Virus record (IMG/VR): IMGVR_UViG_3300044633_000899
Span: 62,001 to 126,000 of that record
Strand: one strand, 5' to 3'
Length of the DNA stretch: 64,000 nt
Shown one piece after another: positions 30,199 to 62,238 of this stretch (positions are counted from its first letter, which is position 1; each line of letters starts with the position of its first letter). Made by a program: the position numbers and the translations under genes. The notes below the pieces were generated by a model. The model searched no databases, was not told the origin of the DNA, and saw nothing but the letters and a program-made list of their open reading frames with translations.

Positions 30199-30514
30199 TA
30201 TGGAAAAAAGAAAAAGGATACTGATTGAGAAGTTTTTAGATACACACGTTGGTTTTGATTTAATAAAAAATGAGGATGATCGTTCTATTGTTTTAACTCA
30301 AAAGACGAAAAATAGAGAAACAGATTATTTTGTTTATAATAATGTAAATGACACATTAGTCGTCAATTATGATGTGGTTATTTTAACATTGTCCAGTGTT
30401 TTTAATATTAAAGAAGGAATTGATGATGTTTATAATATTGTAAAAGATTGGGTTTTTACAAATTATAATATTAATGCACATACAATAATAGGGGCTATGA
30501 TATGGAAAATGTAA
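30199..30514 (+). CDS. hypothetical protein
   Basis: Probable start MEKRKR. Confidence 0.55.
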
Positions 30515-30807
30515 TAATTAATAGTTTTAATGAACTATATAAGGGAAAAGAGTTTGTTTACGATGGTAAATACGGACGTGTATTTGGTGTTGTTGATTCT
30601 ATATTTGTTTCTCAAACAATGATGTTTGACGAAAACCGTGAAAAATTATTAACTTATAAAGTTGATCATTCAGTAAAGGGAACACAGACAATGGAAAAAC
30701 CAGAATTAAAAGAGATGAAAGAATTTGTTGCAACACGTATGGAATTTCAGATACGTTCAACAAAGGGTGTATTATATGAATTTGATAAATGTTATATTAT
30801 TATTTAA
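30502..30807 (+). CDS. hypothetical protein
   Basis: Coupled ORF. Confidence 0.55.
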   Translation: MENVIINSFNELYKGKEFVYDGKYGRVFGVVDSIFVSQTMMFDENREKLLTYKVDHSVKGTQTMEKPELKEMKEFVATRMEFQIRSTKGVLYEFDKCYIII

Positions 30808-42795: not shown

Positions 42796-42846
42796 ATGTA
42801 TAATTTAAATGATCCCCACGTTATTGGTTGGGGGATAAAACCATTG

Positions 42847-42918
42847 TAGTCCCACCGGGAATCGAACCCGACTTTCCAGGATGAAAACCTGACGACCTAA
42901 CCGATAGTCGATGGGACC
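42847..42918 (-). tRNA. trnE: tRNA-Glu (TTC), no encoded CCA
   Basis: Full cloverleaf: GGTCCCA/TGGGACT acceptor, TCAGG-TTTTCAT-CCTGG anticodon arm, GGTTCGATTCC T-arm. Confidence 0.92.
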
Positions 42919-50592: not shown

Positions 50593-50642
50593 AATTCTTC
50601 CTTTCTGATTGGACGTTTTAACAAAAAAAATATGTTATATAT
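50591..50642 (+). repeat. 52-bp exact duplication of a promoter-upstream block (second copy 52822-52873)
   Basis: AAAATTCTTCCTTTCTGATTGGACGTTTTAACAAAAAAAATATGTTATATAT; partial third copy near 49043. Confidence 0.8.
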
Positions 50643-50659
50643 TTATATATAAAACCAGT

Positions 50660-52441
50660 ATGAAAAAAATAATTAGATTAACAGAATTGGATTTGGTATC
50701 AACGATAAATAAAATTATCACTGAACATAAATTTATTACTGAAATAGGTGATTTACAATCACCATATGAAAAATTAATGACTTGCAAATTCACATCTGAT
50801 GGTAAACATGTTGTTTATGAAGGTAAAGCATACTCAACAATAAATGGGAACGAAGTCTTAATTAATGAAAATTGGAGTTTGAGTGATATATTACATACTG
50901 GTGCGGATCTTTTATCTGCTGGTATGGATTTTGTAATCCCAGGTTCTGGTGCTGTTATTGATGTTTTAAATGCACTTAGTTATATTATTGAAGCACAATT
51001 TAAATCTGAAAAAGAAAGAGATTCACTATATATTATGGCGGCAATAACATTCGCTTTTGTTATATTGCCTGGACCATTACAAGCAATTGCAATACCACTT
51101 AAACGAGCAGTTAAGACTGGTGTTGGTTTGGCGTCAAAAATTGTTGTTAAGGGTTTAAAAATTGTTGGTGGAATTTTGGATACAATATTACTTAAATTAC
51201 CAAGTAAAATAAAATCTGCATTACAATCAACTTTGGCAAAAAAGATTCTCGGTAGATTTAGAGGTAAAATTACTGGATTTATTGATAAGTTTACATCAAG
51301 GATTAAACAAATATTATCAACAATTACAGGTAAAACCGGTAAGAAGGGTGTTGAAAATTCAGTAAATGTTAGTTCCGATCAATTTAAAAAAATGTTTGAT
51401 ATTGATAGAACTCTTGGTAAATATGGTTTCAAGGAAACTCCTGAAACAATAAACGCAACATTAAAAAATGTTAACTTTACCAAAGATGGAATAAAAGTTG
51501 TTAATAAAACAACACACAGTCAAGGTCAAGAAGCGTTTTCGGCGGTATTACCTAATAATGTGAGAATGATATTTTATAATAGTAGTAAAGGCTGGATTCC
51601 AATAAAAGGATATAATGGAAAAAAAGCAATACAAATGACAGATATAGACTCAAAGTATGTTAAAGATTTAATATCGGTTTTGAACCGTGAGGGACTGAGT
51701 GGGTTAGGTAAACAAGTTGGTAAACAAGTTGGTAAAAATACCATTACTCCTGTTGCGATACAAGCAGCAAAAAACTTTTTTAGTAGAATACCAAAAATTT
51801 CACAAGGAGCAAAAGTTTTAAGAAAAGCGGGCTTTGCTAAAGGTTATACGTATAAATATATGGGTCCTAAAGGTCCTTTAAAGGGAACAATTTCGGAAAT
51901 AACGGACAGTGGCGTTAAGATATTATTTGAGAAAAACGGTAGGAAATTCACAACAATGGTTCCTGTTGAAACCTTCATTAATAAGGCTGTGGGTGCACCT
52001 TGGTTGAGAAGAGGGTGGGGAGTAACAGTTCCGTTGTTTGTTAAAAGATTTAGTGATATGTTATTAGCTGACGGATCAAATATTGATTATAATAAGTTAG
52101 ATTCTATTCCAGATTTAGATCCCAAACAAACATCATCAGAAACAGAAACTTTTTTACAAGGTGAAGTTGCGGAGTATGAAGGTGAAAGTGATTACACAGT
52201 AAATACAAACGTCCAAAATATCCAAAACGCATTACTAGCATTAGGATATCAATTACCTAATGCAGGTGCTGATGGTAAATTTGGTCCAGAAACAAAAACT
52301 GCTTTAGAGAAATTCCAAAAGGATAATGGTTTAACAACATCCGTAGGAAAAATGGATAGATTAACAACTAAAAAATTGGCGGAAAAATTAAAGGGTAAAA
52401 ACCTTGAACCCGATTTACAAAATAATTTAAACAAAATGTAA
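50660..52441 (+). CDS. leader + pre-toxin-like helical segment + C-terminal PG-binding domain
   Basis: MKKIIRLTELDL; LHTGADLLSAGMDFVIPGSGAVIDVLNALSY; IQNALLALGY....ADGKFGPETK.AL..FQ..NGL. Confidence 0.6.
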   Translation: MKKIIRLTELDLVSTINKIITEHKFITEIGDLQSPYEKLMTCKFTSDGKHVVYEGKAYSTINGNEVLINENWSLSDILHTGADLLSAGMDFVIPGSGAVIDVLNALSYIIEAQFKSEKERDSLYIMAAITFAFVILPGPLQAIAIPLKRAVKTGVGLASKIVVKGLKIVGGILDTILLKLPSKIKSALQSTLAKKILGRFRGKITGFIDKFTSRIKQILSTITGKTGKKGVENSVNVSSDQFKKMFDIDRTLGKYGFKETPETINATLKNVNFTKDGIKVVNKTTHSQGQEAFSAVLPNNVRMIFYNSSKGWIPIKGYNGKKAIQMTDIDSKYVKDLISVLNREGLSGLGKQVGKQVGKNTITPVAIQAAKNFFSRIPKISQGAKVLRKAGFAKGYTYKYMGPKGPLKGTISEITDSGVKILFEKNGRKFTTMVPVETFINKAVGAPWLRRGWGVTVPLFVKRFSDMLLADGSNIDYNKLDSIPDLDPKQTSSETETFLQGEVAEYEGESDYTVNTNVQNIQNALLALGYQLPNAGADGKFGPETKTALEKFQKDNGLTTSVGKMDRLTTKKLAEKLKGKNLEPDLQNNLNKM

Positions 52442-58649: not shown

Positions 58650-58698
58650 TTAATAAAATATAATTGATTTTTAAAACATTTCAAGGTAATATTTATAT

Positions 58699-59295
58699 AT
58701 GATGAAACATACATTAACTATATTATTAATTTTATTTAATTTGTACACATTTGGACAATGTAATGGTACAACGTCTTTTACATTAACACCACAACCAGTG
58801 AATAACACCTATCAATCAGGTCAAACCGTCACTATGTGTTTTACAATGAATGGCTATACACAAGCAGGGACAAATTGGTTTGAAGGTTTTGACCTTAACT
58901 TGGGTGTTGGTTGGCAAAGTGTGTCACCACAAACAACACCAGCAAACTGTGGTGGTAATAACAGTGGTGGACAATGGGTATGGAGAACCTCCGTGACATC
59001 AACGACAACACCAATTACAACTGTTGGTCCTGGTTATTTCTTTGATTTAAACAACGATGGTAATCCAGGTAATGATTTTGGTGATTCAGGATCTTGTATT
59101 TGGTCGTTTTGTGTTACATTAGTTGTTGCAAACACTTGTACAACACAAAGTTTATTAATCCAAGTAACACCAGGTTCCGATGGTGTATGGGGAAGTTACA
59201 ATAGTTCATCGTGTGATAATGTTACACCAATAAATGTCTTTAACGGAACAATAAACTCGGTACCAATAACACTTGGGCCAATAACACATAATTAA
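58699..59295 (+). CDS. secreted beta-rich protein ending GPITHN
   Basis: Signal peptide ..LYTFG|Q; Thr/Gly/Cys-rich. Confidence 0.7.
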   Translation: MMKHTLTILLILFNLYTFGQCNGTTSFTLTPQPVNNTYQSGQTVTMCFTMNGYTQAGTNWFEGFDLNLGVGWQSVSPQTTPANCGGNNSGGQWVWRTSVTSTTTPITTVGPGYFFDLNNDGNPGNDFGDSGSCIWSFCVTLVVANTCTTQSLLIQVTPGSDGVWGSYNSSSCDNVTPINVFNGTINSVPITLGPITHN

Positions 59296-59297
59296 TT

Positions 59298-59876
59298 ATG
59301 AAAAAACTATTAGTATTTTTAATGATAATGATATCGGGAATAGCATTATCACAATCAACGGTAAACCCAGACACAGTTTGTTATCAATCAACAGCGTTAT
59401 CAACGTATTCCGTACCAAATATTGGTGCTGGAACATACACTTGGACTGTAACAACACCGGGGGTAATAACAAGTGGGCAAGGAACAAGTACAATTTCTGT
59501 TAATTGGTCTACAGCAGCACCTGGATTAATACCAAATGGTGTTTCTGTGACGTATTCATCACCACCACCAGCCAATTGTCCAGCAACACCTGTTACTCTA
59601 AACGTTTTAATCTATAATATTACACCAACAATAACACAAATTGGCCCTTTTTGTGAGTCAGATCCTTGTGTTACATTAAATGGAACACCAATTGGTGGTG
59701 TTTTTAGTGGTGTTGGGGTCAATGGTACACAGTTTTGTCCTGATTTAGTTGCTAATGGTACAAATAATACCTCAACAATAACATATACAATAACATCTGG
59801 TGGTTGTACATTCTCAACACAATCAACTGTTGGGGTTTATGGTACGCCATCATTATCACCAATACAACATAACTAA
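59298..59876 (+). CDS. secreted PKD/Ig-like protein ending SPIQHN
   Basis: Signal peptide ..GIALS|Q; YTWTV..G.ITSGQGT..I.V.W. Confidence 0.7.
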   Translation: MKKLLVFLMIMISGIALSQSTVNPDTVCYQSTALSTYSVPNIGAGTYTWTVTTPGVITSGQGTSTISVNWSTAAPGLIPNGVSVTYSSPPPANCPATPVTLNVLIYNITPTITQIGPFCESDPCVTLNGTPIGGVFSGVGVNGTQFCPDLVANGTNNTSTITYTITSGGCTFSTQSTVGVYGTPSLSPIQHN

Positions 59877-60439
59877 TGAAACTCATTATTTTTATATTAT
59901 TCTTTTGTTCATTTACCTTATTAGGGCAACAAACCTTTGAATTATGTCCTGGTGAGTTAAAAACTGTTAGTTATTTCTCAGAAACTAATAGTATTGGTAT
60001 AAATATATGGTCAGTTAACGGATTAACATACATTGGAGACACCTTAGTATACAGTTTTAATCAACCAGGTGTGTATAATATTGATTTAGTTAGGGAAAAT
60101 GTACTATGTAGGACTGAAGAGTCGTACAATGTCACAATAACACCCTGTATTGGGGTCATTTATTGGATTCCAAACGCATTTACACCAGATAATAACGAAT
60201 TTAATCAAACATTTAGACCTATTTTTAATGATGGGATAGATATTGATGGTTTTTCGTTCACTATTTATAACAGATGGGGTCAATTAATCTGGGAAACAGA
60301 GGATTTGAACGTAAATTGGGATGGAACATACAATAATACTATATGTTCGGATGGTATTTATATCTGGAATCTTAAATTTAACGTAAAAAACAACGATGAA
60401 AAGAGAAATGACCACGGACATATTGTAATAATACGTTAA
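59876..60439 (+). CDS. T9SS type-B sorting domain (gliding motility-associated CTD) protein
   Basis: IPNAFTPDN...N..F.P..F.IYNRWG..I.ET....WDG....DG.Y.W..GHI..IR; signal ..TLLG|Q. Confidence 0.85.
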   Translation: MKLIIFILFFCSFTLLGQQTFELCPGELKTVSYFSETNSIGINIWSVNGLTYIGDTLVYSFNQPGVYNIDLVRENVLCRTEESYNVTITPCIGVIYWIPNAFTPDNNEFNQTFRPIFNDGIDIDGFSFTIYNRWGQLIWETEDLNVNWDGTYNNTICSDGIYIWNLKFNVKNNDEKRNDHGHIVIIR

Positions 60440-61707: not shown

Positions 61708-62238
61708 TTATTGTCCTTTGACTAAATTAATACATTGTTTTAAATATTCTTTTGTTCTTGGTGATGGTGTAAATTCGTCATCCTTTGTTTGTAGATTTAA
61801 AACACGTTCAATATCTTTAACTAATTCTGTACCATGCTCATTTTCCTTATATAACTCAGTAACTTTATCCATCGCCTTACGACATTCATTTGTTGTTTCG
61901 TCATAATAGTGTTTATTTCTAAAACGATTTAAACCATTCATCATTTCGTAAGCCAAATGTGATCCACCATCTTTTATATCTTTAAATAATCTTACATTAT
62001 TTAATATACCTAAAGTATCAACCATTGAGTTAACACCACTTCTTCTTTTTGTCACACCTGGACCATATTTAATATATTCATCTGCAAACCCAACAATTTC
62101 TGTTAAGGGTACAACGTTTTCAGGTAAACATCTTGGTTGTACATCTGTTTTTTTAGGTGATTTTTTTTCTGATTGTTCGGATAAAACTTTACCAATAATT
62201 CTATTAATATCACTCTCGTTTAATCTATATTTTTTCAT
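61708..62238 (-). CDS. leader-bearing hypothetical protein
   Basis: MKKYRLNESDINRIIGKVLSEQ. Confidence 0.65.
   Translation of the reverse strand: MKKYRLNESDINRIIGKVLSEQSEKKSPKKTDVQPRCLPENVVPLTEIVGFADEYIKYGPGVTKRRSGVNSMVDTLGILNNVRLFKDIKDGGSHLAYEMMNGLNRFRNKHYYDETTNECRKAMDKVTELYKENEHGTELVKDIERVLNLQTKDDEFTPSPRTKEYLKQCINLVKGQ

Follow-up and report, generated by a model that had tools for sequence, protein, structure and literature searches.

How might a phage place its own proteins on the surface of the bacterium it infects? The question is raised by three consecutive genes in a lake-water phage of Bacteroidota. A first-pass annotation, made from the sequence alone, described them as an operon of three coupled genes for Sec-exported proteins, each with Gln at +1, the last carrying a type-B type IX secretion system (T9SS) sorting domain. 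It inferred that the phage decorates the infected cell or occupies the host T9SS, for example to mask receptors (superinfection exclusion) or to alter gliding and adhesion. The window analyzed here is a 64,000-nucleotide stretch, positions 62001–126000 of a 296,330-bp IMG/VR virus record that CheckV rates 100% complete; positions below are those of the window. The features are as follows.

58650–58698 (+), intergenic region of 49 nt between g1 and a divergent 92-aa ORF, the presumed promoter region
58699–59295 (+), g1, the tip subunit (198 aa), a Cys-rich β-sandwich in the predicted model, no sorting domain
58699–58755 (+), g1 Sec signal peptide (residues 1–19), with cleavage before Gln20
59275–59292 (+), g1 C-terminal tail GPITHN, an instance of the I-x-H-N-COOH motif
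59298–59876 (+), g2, the stalk or adaptor subunit (192 aa), two predicted Ig-like domains and a free C-terminal tail, no sorting domain
59298–59351 (+), g2 Sec signal peptide (residues 1–18), with cleavage before Gln19
59361–59519 (+), g2 PKD_6-like domain 1, inferred to receive the tail of g1
59838–59873 (+), g2 C-terminal tail (mature residues 163–174, ending SPIQHN), the predicted docking strand
59874–59878 (+), TAATG stop/start overlap between g2 and g3 (translational coupling)
59876–60439 (+), g3, the anchor subunit (187 aa), a PKD-like N-domain followed by a T9SS type-B sorting domain
59876–59926 (+), g3 Sec signal peptide (residues 1–17), with cleavage before Gln18
59927–60160 (+), g3 N-terminal PKD-like domain, the predicted receptor for the g2 tail
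60167–60436 (+), g3 type-B T9SS C-terminal sorting domain (CHU_C/TIGR04131)

To ascertain whether the locus is as described, the reading frames, signal peptides and sorting domain were examined in turn, and the observation held in full. The gap between g1 and g2 is 2 nt, and the g2 stop overlaps the g3 start by 1 nt, an overlap that recurs in 50 of 71 related loci. Each protein begins with a basic n-region, a hydrophobic stretch of 12–14 residues and small residues at −3/−1, followed by Gln (YTFG|QC in g1, IALS|QS in g2 and TLLG|QQ in g3), as judged by eye and with a hydropathy heuristic. The Gln at +1, expected of Bacteroidota Q-rule SPase-I substrates (PMC5837995), is invariant in 47 of 47 homologues of each gene, and at least four other ORFs of the phage show the same pattern. 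A lipoprotein (SPase II) reading of g1 (FGQC) was rejected, because Gln rather than a small residue precedes the Cys. A profile search, which had been proposed beforehand as a check, confirmed the sorting domain of g3 above both curated cut-offs and at the very C terminus: PF13585 (CHU_C) scored 49.9 bits against a cut-off of 27 (residues 98–184, profile positions 3–85 of 86) and TIGR04131 36.0 bits against 35 (residues 98–187, positions 3–85 of 85). The motifs PNAFTP, NRWG and WDG are present. The PNxFTP, NRWG and WDGTY blocks are invariant or nearly so in 47 homologues, although they were not mapped onto the boundaries of the five conserved motifs A–E that secretion of the SprB CTD requires (PMC12618676). 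Neither g1 nor g2 matched either profile. No second CHU_C or PKD_6 gene and no type-A sorting domain was found in the 296-kb genome.

The cassette is phage sequence rather than host or contaminant DNA. The record, that of a jumbo myovirus, holds a portal (phrog_213, E 1e-56), a tail sheath (phrog_23, E 5e-55), a DNA polymerase and virion proteins, with an endolysin and an RNA ligase inside the window, and contigs of independent lake metagenomes join the cassette to both flanks. A megablast search of 14 kb against GenBank phages gave no match. A scan for promoters found sigma-70-like sites no more often than in shuffled sequence, and no terminator was found after g3. One metatranscriptome holds contigs of a ∼90–93% relative across g1, the g1|g2 junction, g3 and the flanks, and another holds a 156-nt identical piece of g2. 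Because the flanks are covered too, DNA carry-over is not excluded, and these contigs only hint at transcription.

What, then, are the three proteins? No Pfam, NCBIfam or PHROG family matched g1, and a PHROGs scan of all three proteins returned nothing. The g1 model (pLDDT 80.8) showed only weak likeness to adhesin or cohesin sandwiches; its PDB matches in a Foldseek search were generic β-sandwiches with TM 0.3–0.45, from which no ligand is inferred. Stand-alone g1 clusters in the ESM Atlas are 98%–100% viral. In g2, PKD_6 (PF19408) scored 33.2 bits against a cut-off of 25 at residues 22–74. The g2 model (pLDDT 91.1) contains two β-sandwiches with the last ∼11 residues as coil, and the nearest solved folds are the SraP stalk modules and the Aureispira GhpA fibre. 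The N-domain of g3 is a distant homologue of g2 domain 1, found only by profile-profile comparison (hhalign probability 96.9%, E 1.4e-10). None of the three proteins matched the SprB repeat (PF13573), so the cassette would work like a small SprB-type adhesin without being a SprB-repeat protein.

Comparison with other loci indicates that the three genes are not independent secreted proteins, but correspond to the tip, stalk and anchor modules of one SprB-like adhesin that other phages and bacteria encode as a single chain. Such chains were found at loci L016 (in LR745206, 634 kb; 732 aa; SprB, PKD_6 and CHU_C), L017 (in LR756502, 642 kb; at least 1481 aa; a g1-like domain, 13 SprB repeats, PKD and CHU_C), and L168 and L169 (IMG/VR contigs; 527 and 526 aa; g1, PKD_6 and CHU_C). 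g1 is homologous to the N-terminal domain of single-chain SprB-repeat/CHU_C proteins. The split form recurs in at least 60 distinct viral contigs; the order g1>g2>g3 was counted in 62 distinct viral loci, in 10 or more different flanking contexts. The same layout occurs in freshwater Flavobacteriales chromosomes, at loci L181 and L182, the latter with two g2 copies, although the closest bacterial copies are only 53%–57% (g2) and 27% (g3) identical. The existence of single-chain homologues raises the possibility that the three ORFs are decaying fragments of one adhesin gene, or part of a chimeric assembly. This reading is contradicted by the evidence and remains a remote one: each piece has its own complete signal peptide with an invariant Gln, the split sits at the same linkers in 60 or more diverged loci with 50%–80% mean identity and synonymous change, and independent assemblies join the cassette to phage flanks. 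Read-through or frameshifting that would join the ORFs is likewise excluded, because a second in-frame stop follows each junction (TAA TTA TGA and TAA TGA) and each downstream ORF starts with a complete signal peptide.

How could separate subunits form one fibre? Almost every subunit without a sorting domain ends in I-x-H-N-COOH, whatever its tip domain. Of unique proteins, 67 of 68 in the g1 class and 66 of 69 in the g2 class end in HN, and the rest in HD. At least five unrelated tip types also end in I-x-H-N, whereas fused forms do not. In g1, H178 and N179 are invariant in 47 of 47 homologues; in g2, P166, P170, I171 and H173 are invariant and L168, S169 and N174 are conserved in 90% or more. 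This is far more than chance, as only 2 of 643 ORFs of 60 aa or more in the genome end in HN, and they are g1 and g2. The possibility that the tail is an RNA or DNA signal for coupling or recombination was rejected, because the His, Asn, Ile, Pro and Gly codons vary synonymously while the residues stay fixed, and Asn changes only to Asp. An intein-like meaning of the terminal His-Asn was also dropped, since there is no intein domain and nothing downstream to splice.

A complex prediction with controls placed the tail of g2 on the PKD-like N-domain of g3, with an ipSAE of 0.73 in three runs against a best control of 0.01. That mark was reached by 58 of 80 solved complexes and 2 of 110 mismatched pairs, counts that are only rough because our own alignments were used. 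The runs agree in 98% or more of their contacts, and the partner's pLDDT is 88. All of g2 residues 163–174 lie in the predicted interface, with I171 making the most confident contacts, against residues 2, 14–20, 22–24, 52, 54 and 56–67 of mature g3, among which Y16, I52 and C61 are conserved. The score may partly reflect the way neighbouring domains pack in single-chain relatives, and says nothing about affinity in trans.

Taken together, the favored explanation, held with moderate confidence, is that the cassette encodes a small SprB-like cell-surface fibre of three separately exported subunits. The analysis itself establishes the Gln-exposing Sec signal peptides, the full type-B domain of g3, the collinearity of the three proteins with the tip, stalk and base of single-chain adhesins, and selection on the tail at the protein level; the docking of the g2 tail, with Ile171 at its center, rests on a controlled prediction. 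The remainder is inferred, as are export, its dependence on the T9SS, assembly and surface display themselves. The like tail of g1 would dock on the homologous first domain of g2, giving the chain g1-g2-g3. Assembly would occur in the periplasm, and the type-B domain of g3 would carry the whole fibre through the host T9SS, which moves folded proteins (PMC9251779). A literature search found no report of partners without a sorting domain riding on a T9SS cargo, so this step has no precedent. Type-B cargo need PorP/SprF shuttles, usually encoded next to the cargo gene, and "orphan" cargo share one (PMC12618676, PMC9143113). No PF11751 match was found in the phage genome even at E ≤ 1, so g3 must use host T9SS parts and would be an orphan cargo, held on a host PorP/SprF-type shuttle that it must share or compete for. 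In the bacterial MAGs the cassette likewise has no adjacent shuttle, although each genome has 5–10 elsewhere.

The purpose of such a fibre is inferred only weakly. It would redecorate the infected cell with a conserved tip, perhaps as an adhesin that keeps infected cells on particles or neighbouring cells, or perhaps as an exclusion device that masks receptors or displaces host type-B adhesins, which phages of flavobacteria often depend on; no evidence separates the two. The interpretation in the first-pass annotation is therefore supported in part: a phage operon of Q-rule Sec substrates ending in a genuine T9SS type-B cargo stands, but it overlooked that only g3 has a sorting domain, that the genes correspond to modules of one adhesin with a conserved docking tail, and that the cassette occurs in many phage lineages and in Flavobacteriales chromosomes, while nothing here speaks for or against receptor masking, superinfection exclusion, altered gliding or adhesion, or occupation of the T9SS.

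Three other readings bear on the same evidence. The cassette may jam the T9SS or its shuttle, which is the suggestion of the first-pass annotation that it occupies the T9SS, its main job being to compete with host SprB-like type-B adhesins for a PorP/SprF shuttle so that the infected cell is stripped of phage receptors and superinfection is blocked, or progeny are kept from adsorbing to debris, with the tip incidental. In agreement with this, the phage has no shuttle of its own, type-B cargo and shuttles form specific pairs with some crosstalk (PMC12618676), and resistance to Flavobacterium phages maps to gliding and T9SS genes (PMC9804748). In addition, g3 is the fastest-evolving part (mean pairwise identity 0.50, against 0.78 for g1), as expected if it tracks host shuttles. 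However, g1 is the most conserved part and is under clear purifying selection, which is odd for an incidental passenger, a jammer would need only g3, and bacteria carry the same split system for their own use; this reading is considered unlikely. Similarly unlikely is that only g3 reaches the surface while g1 and g2 act in the periplasm, for example on the envelope, with the tail a stability or sorting tag unrelated to assembly. The absence of a sorting domain in g1 and g2 and of any described T9SS piggy-back would fit. Collinearity with single-chain surface adhesins, the fixed gene order with overlapping stop and start, and a predicted interface that uses exactly the conserved tail do not, nor does the presence of the same tail on unrelated tip domains typical of surface adhesins (SprB repeats, CUB, PKD and a T9SS-associated galactose-binding-like domain). 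Decoration of virions rather than service on the cell surface, for instance by capture after lysis, much as Ig-like decoration proteins do, is very unlikely. In one phage lineage (locus L023 and 13 similar loci) the cassette does sit between the tail tube and tape-measure genes, and Ig-like domains are common on virions (Fraser 2006, as cited in PMC6949934). In contrast, signal peptides and a T9SS sorting domain send the proteins out of the cytoplasm, where virions are built, the neighbours in this phage and most others are not structural genes, and bacterial chromosomes carry the same system.

As currently understood, the T9SS exports single polypeptides that each carry their own C-terminal sorting domain. 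A conserved three-subunit cargo in which only the last subunit has that domain makes a sharp and testable prediction: either folded complexes can ride through the SprA translocon, or there is an unknown route across the outer membrane. A bolder reading, which is tentative and somewhat less likely than not, is that the I-x-H-N tail is a general docking tag with which Bacteroidota, and the phages that copied the system, build multi-subunit fibres in the periplasm and export partners without a sorting domain by piggy-backing on a single type-B cargo. This would be the first multi-subunit cargo and the first hitch-hiker route described for the T9SS, with interchangeable tip modules that many lake phages would use to re-surface the cells they infect. 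The tail, being short, nearly invariant and portable across unrelated tip domains, could also serve as a natural tag for displaying proteins on Bacteroidota surfaces. For phage biology, T9SS hijacking would no longer be the single anecdote of the type-A enzymes of "Cryophage" but a widespread, mobile cassette in freshwater phages, from small myoviruses to genomes of more than 600 kb, which points to manipulation of host surface adhesion or of receptors during infection of abundant lake Flavobacteriales.

Among known systems, the closest are the SprB-type gliding adhesins and other type-B CTD cargo of Flavobacterium johnsoniae with their PorP/SprF shuttles (PMC12618676, PMC9143113). Both have a Sec signal peptide and a CHU_C/TIGR04131 domain, relatives of the cassette carry SprB repeats and PKD domains, and orphan cargo without an adjacent shuttle gene are known. 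Here, however, the adhesin is cut into three polypeptides, each with its own signal peptide and joined, in this view, by a conserved I-x-H-N tail rather than a peptide bond; it is tiny (about 520 mature residues in all, against 6497 aa for SprB) and is carried by phages. The single-chain homologues in other phages have the same modules in the same order (g1-like tip, PKD_6 stalk, PKD-like base and CHU_C), with 31%–46% identity for L016/L017 and 29%–50% for L168, but are one polypeptide with one signal peptide and no His-Asn at the junctions, and the split points of the cassette fall in their inter-domain linkers. The "Cryophage" T9SS cargo genes (Bellas et al., 2020, PMC7468147) and the T9SS sorting-domain proteins near BACON genes in gut phages (de Jonge et al., 2019, PMC6949934) are also phage-encoded and presumed to use the host's secretion system. 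The Cryophage proteins are single enzymes or PA14 proteins with type-A domains, and term searches of the two papers found no multi-subunit arrangement or docking tail, whereas the present cassette is type-B and tripartite. Type V (Mfa1/FimA) fimbriae of Porphyromonas gingivalis, with the T9SS-dependent tip protein Mfa5 (PMC7835359), would likewise be Bacteroidota surface fibres of several subunits, one of which depends on the T9SS. Donor-strand complementation has been proposed for Mfa subunits (cited in PMC7835359). Type V pili assemble by exchange of C-terminal strands. The other Mfa subunits are lipoproteins that use another route and are matured by gingipains, whereas here all the subunits are SPase-I substrates, the T9SS subunit is the anchor rather than the tip, and the folds and motifs are unrelated. 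Finally, Tat "hitch-hiker" export and chaperone-usher donor-strand complementation share the concept that a partner without a signal is exported bound to a signal-bearing subunit, and that a terminal strand of one subunit completes or extends an Ig-like domain of the next. They use different machines and membranes and have no sequence relationship to the cassette, for which, in the T9SS, the mechanism is a proposal rather than an established one.

Three ORFs lie on the + strand between 58699 and 60439.

58699-59295, + strand: g1, 198 aa
59298-59876, + strand: g2, 192 aa
59876-60439, + strand: g3, 187 aa

Two bases separate g1 from g2, and the stop codon of g2 overlaps the start codon of g3 as TAATG. 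Each product opens with a short basic stretch, 12-14 hydrophobic residues and small residues at -3/-1, followed by Gln (..YTFG followed by QC in g1, ..IALS by QS in g2 and ..TLLG by QQ in g3). This is the pattern described as the Q-rule for signal peptidase I substrates of Bacteroidota (PMC5837995). The assignment rests on the sequence, on a hydropathy heuristic and on the fact that this Gln is invariant in 47 of 47 homologues of each gene. g3 carries a complete type-B T9SS sorting domain, with PF13585 CHU_C scoring 49.9 bits against a cut-off of 27 and TIGR04131 scoring 36.0 against 35, both over the full profile. In g2 a PKD_6 domain was found (33.2 bits against 25), whereas g1 matched no Pfam, NCBIfam or PHROG family. 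The first-pass annotation had described three coupled genes with signal peptides exposing Gln, the last with a type-B sorting domain, and this observation is confirmed.

The mature g1 protein (58756-59292) has seven invariant cysteines, an odd number, including Cys2 directly after the N-terminal Gln, and g3 has three. One Cys in each may be free for an intermolecular disulfide; disulfides to the gliding track are known for SprF (PMC12635249).

To ascertain whether the cassette is phage DNA, the surrounding record was examined. The window corresponds to positions 62001-126000 of a 296,330-bp IMG/VR virus record (G000:C1) with 30% GC, which CheckV rates 100% complete and whose first 127 nt recur 174 nt before the end. 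The record encodes a portal with an HNH insert, a tail sheath, a DNA polymerase and virion proteins, and inside the window an endolysin, an RNA ligase and a thymidylate synthase; it is a jumbo myovirus. The stretch is present in 24 lake-water or freshwater sequencing runs from 24 studies, and contigs from independent runs join the cassette to both flanks. The cassette is phage DNA. No PorP/SprF gene, no type-A sorting domain and no second CHU_C gene was found in the genome. At least four more ORFs have Q-rule signal peptides, which fits a Bacteroidota host. Further features of the genome are as follows (window coordinates unless stated).

162873-165968 of G000:C1 (873-3968 of locus L008), outside the window: portal gene, 1031 aa
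1568-2644, + strand: thymidylate synthase, 358 aa
42409-42795, - strand, and 30375-30785, 138700-139152 and 280740-281156 of G000:C1: four small ORFs (128-150 aa) with Q-rule signal peptides
42846-42918, - strand: tRNA-Glu(TTC), the only tRNA gene in the 64-kb window
50609-52441, + strand: large endolysin-like protein, 610 aa
55830-57101, + strand: Thr/Pro/Gln-rich protein, 423 aa
57112-57537, - strand: FKBP-type peptidyl-prolyl isomerase

The portal match covers only residues 658-917 of its gene product and an HNH-endonuclease match lies at residues 229-412, which may reflect an intein or a homing-endonuclease insertion. Thymidylate synthase matches phrog_160 over 279 profile positions and a second family in two separate stretches, and the gene seems to carry an insertion relative to its relatives. 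The four small ORFs (..SFGQ, ..VNSQ) have no family match and may be further secreted morons. The endolysin-like protein has PG_binding_1 at residues 533-590 and PHROG endolysin hits, and the 423-aa protein has no family match but, by eye, contains PG-binding-like repeats. The isomerase (PF00254, 74.6 bits) has no signal peptide and lies 1.2 kb upstream of the cassette on the other strand; any link to folding of the Pro-rich tails or cargo is conjectural.

A tblastn search with g3 found two GenBank records of uncultured phages, of 634 and 642 kb. In the first, a single 732-aa secreted protein contains g2-like and then g3-like sequence (SprB repeat, PKD_6 and CHU_C). In the second, an ORF of at least 1481 aa starts with a g1-like domain, continues with 13 SprB repeats and a PKD domain, and ends in CHU_C. 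Two IMG/VR contigs, L168 and L169, encode g1, PKD_6 and CHU_C as one chain of 527 and 526 aa, respectively. The split points of the cassette fall exactly in the inter-domain linkers of these single chains, so that the three genes are pieces of one adhesin, with g1 as the tip, g2 as the stalk and g3 as the base with the sorting signal.

The split form is conserved and mobile. Pattern scans of IMG/VR gave 163 stretches related to g2, of which 80 were kept, and 75 related to g1. After removal of duplicates, 62 loci have the order g1>g2>g3, nine have another first gene followed by g2>g3, and four are fused forms. The cassette sits in ten or more different flanking contexts and therefore behaves like a moron. 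In 14 loci, a smaller myovirus lineage (L023:1501-9588), it lies behind a tail-tube gene, inserted between the tail sheath/tube genes and the tape-measure gene, where it is probably expressed late together with structural genes. Stand-alone g1 clusters in the ESM Atlas (71, 141 and 177 members) are 98-100% viral. The same layout occurs on large chromosomal contigs of freshwater Flavobacteriales/Bacteroidota MAGs. One of these, L181, has a 901-aa tip with SprB repeats, then g2, then g3, with methylmalonyl-CoA mutase-like and MazG-like neighbors (judged by eye from their sequences). Another, L182, has a 771-aa tip with CUB, PKD and P-domains, then two copies of g2, then g3. The two g2 copies (L182:4185-5507) are nearly identical and lie 200 nt apart in tandem, which suggests that stalk length can be varied by adding adaptor subunits. 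These genomes have 5-10 PorP/SprF genes each, none beside the cassette. The system is thus host-borne as well, and either phages picked it up or they share it with their hosts.

The subunits without a sorting domain share a C-terminal tail. Among unique proteins, 67 of 68 g1-class proteins end in His-Asn and one in His-Asp, and 67 of the 68 have Ile at -4, the other having Val. Of 69 g2-class proteins, 66 end in His-Asn and three in His-Asp, and all have Ile at -4; SPIQHN alone accounts for 48 of the g2 tails. Alternative tip genes of at least five unrelated kinds (Gly-rich, SprB-repeat, a weak, below-cut-off fn3-like match, a weak, below-cut-off galactose-binding-like match, and CUB/PKD; 262-901 aa) all have a signal peptide, with Gln at +1 wherever the annotated start is clear, and end in I-x-H-N or I-x-H-D. 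The fused forms have Pro-Ile at the equivalent place but no His-Asn. The tail residues are fixed while their codons vary: His is CAT 49 / CAC 20 in g1 and CAT 53 / CAC 18 in g2, and the Asn, Ile, Pro and Gly codons also vary. This indicates that the constraint acts on the peptide and not on the RNA. His is otherwise rare in these genes, and of 643 ORFs in the whole phage genome only g1 and g2 end in HN.

The model of g2 (pLDDT 91.1) shows two Ig-like sandwiches and leaves the last ∼11 residues as coil. Its nearest solved folds are stalk modules of fibrillar adhesins, including the Aureispira GhpA fiber. To assess whether the tail could serve in docking, a controlled complex prediction was carried out with mature g2 and mature g3, and it supports binding. 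The ipSAE is 0.73 in three runs against a best control of 0.01, a mark reached by 58 of 80 solved complexes and by 2 of 110 mismatched pairs, although these counts hold only roughly here because separately built alignments were used. The runs agree in 98% or more of their contacts, and the pLDDT of the partner is 88. The score is the model's own confidence, however, and may borrow from the way these domains pack in single-chain relatives. The g2 side of the predicted interface consists of residues 163-174, exactly the tail, plus a few residues of domain 2, and the g3 side consists of residues 2, 14-24 and 52-67 of its PKD-like N-domain. The most confident contacts center on the invariant Ile171, then Leu168 and Pro166. 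The g3 residues Y16, I52 and C61 are conserved, although the g3 N-domain is the most variable region of the cassette. Domain 1 of g2 is homologous to the g3 N-domain (hhalign probability 96.9%, E 1.4e-10), and the similar tail of g1 therefore plausibly docks on g2. The tandem g2 copies in L182 fit such a chain-forming rule.

In the mechanism proposed here, all three proteins cross the inner membrane by Sec, the subunits join tail-to-head in the order g1-g2-g3, and the type-B domain of g3 takes the assembly through the host T9SS, which is known to move folded proteins (PMC9251779). A host PorP/SprF-type shuttle would then hold it on the surface, as for type-B cargo in general and orphan cargo in particular (PMC12618676, PMC9143113). 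The Sec step is shown by sequence only and the joining of g2 to g3 is predicted, whereas the joining of g1 to g2, export through the T9SS and retention on the surface are inferred. In particular, no precedent for the piggy-back step was found in the limited literature searched, and it is the main point of doubt. The anchor evolves fastest and the tip slowest, with mean pairwise identities of 0.50 for g3, 0.69 for g2 and 0.78 for g1, which fits an anchor tracking different host shuttles and a tip with a common target.

As to its purpose, the cassette could be an adhesin that keeps infected cells on particles or neighbors, or it could instead be an exclusion device that masks or displaces host surface adhesins. 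The latter had been suggested in the first-pass annotation and is made plausible by the link between phage resistance and gliding/T9SS genes in Flavobacterium (PMC9804748). It is ranked here as a rival rather than as the main reading, because the tip is strongly conserved and because bacteria keep the same system for themselves. Taken as a whole, the earlier interpretation is partly supported.

Phage-encoded T9SS cargo have been reported previously. Type-A enzymes in 'Cryophage' were called a unique occurrence (PMC7468147), T9SS sorting-domain proteins lie near BACON genes in gut phages (PMC6949934), and Q-rule proteins occur in P. gingivalis phages (PMC10367356). No description of a type-B, three-subunit cargo with a conserved docking tail, shared by many phages and by Flavobacteriales, was found in the limited literature searched. 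A T9SS-dependent subunit of a multi-subunit fiber is known in Mfa5 (PMC7835359). Phage-borne T9SS cargo are in themselves already known, and what differs here is the type-B, three-subunit form with its conserved, predicted docking tail, which carries a testable and potentially new export principle.
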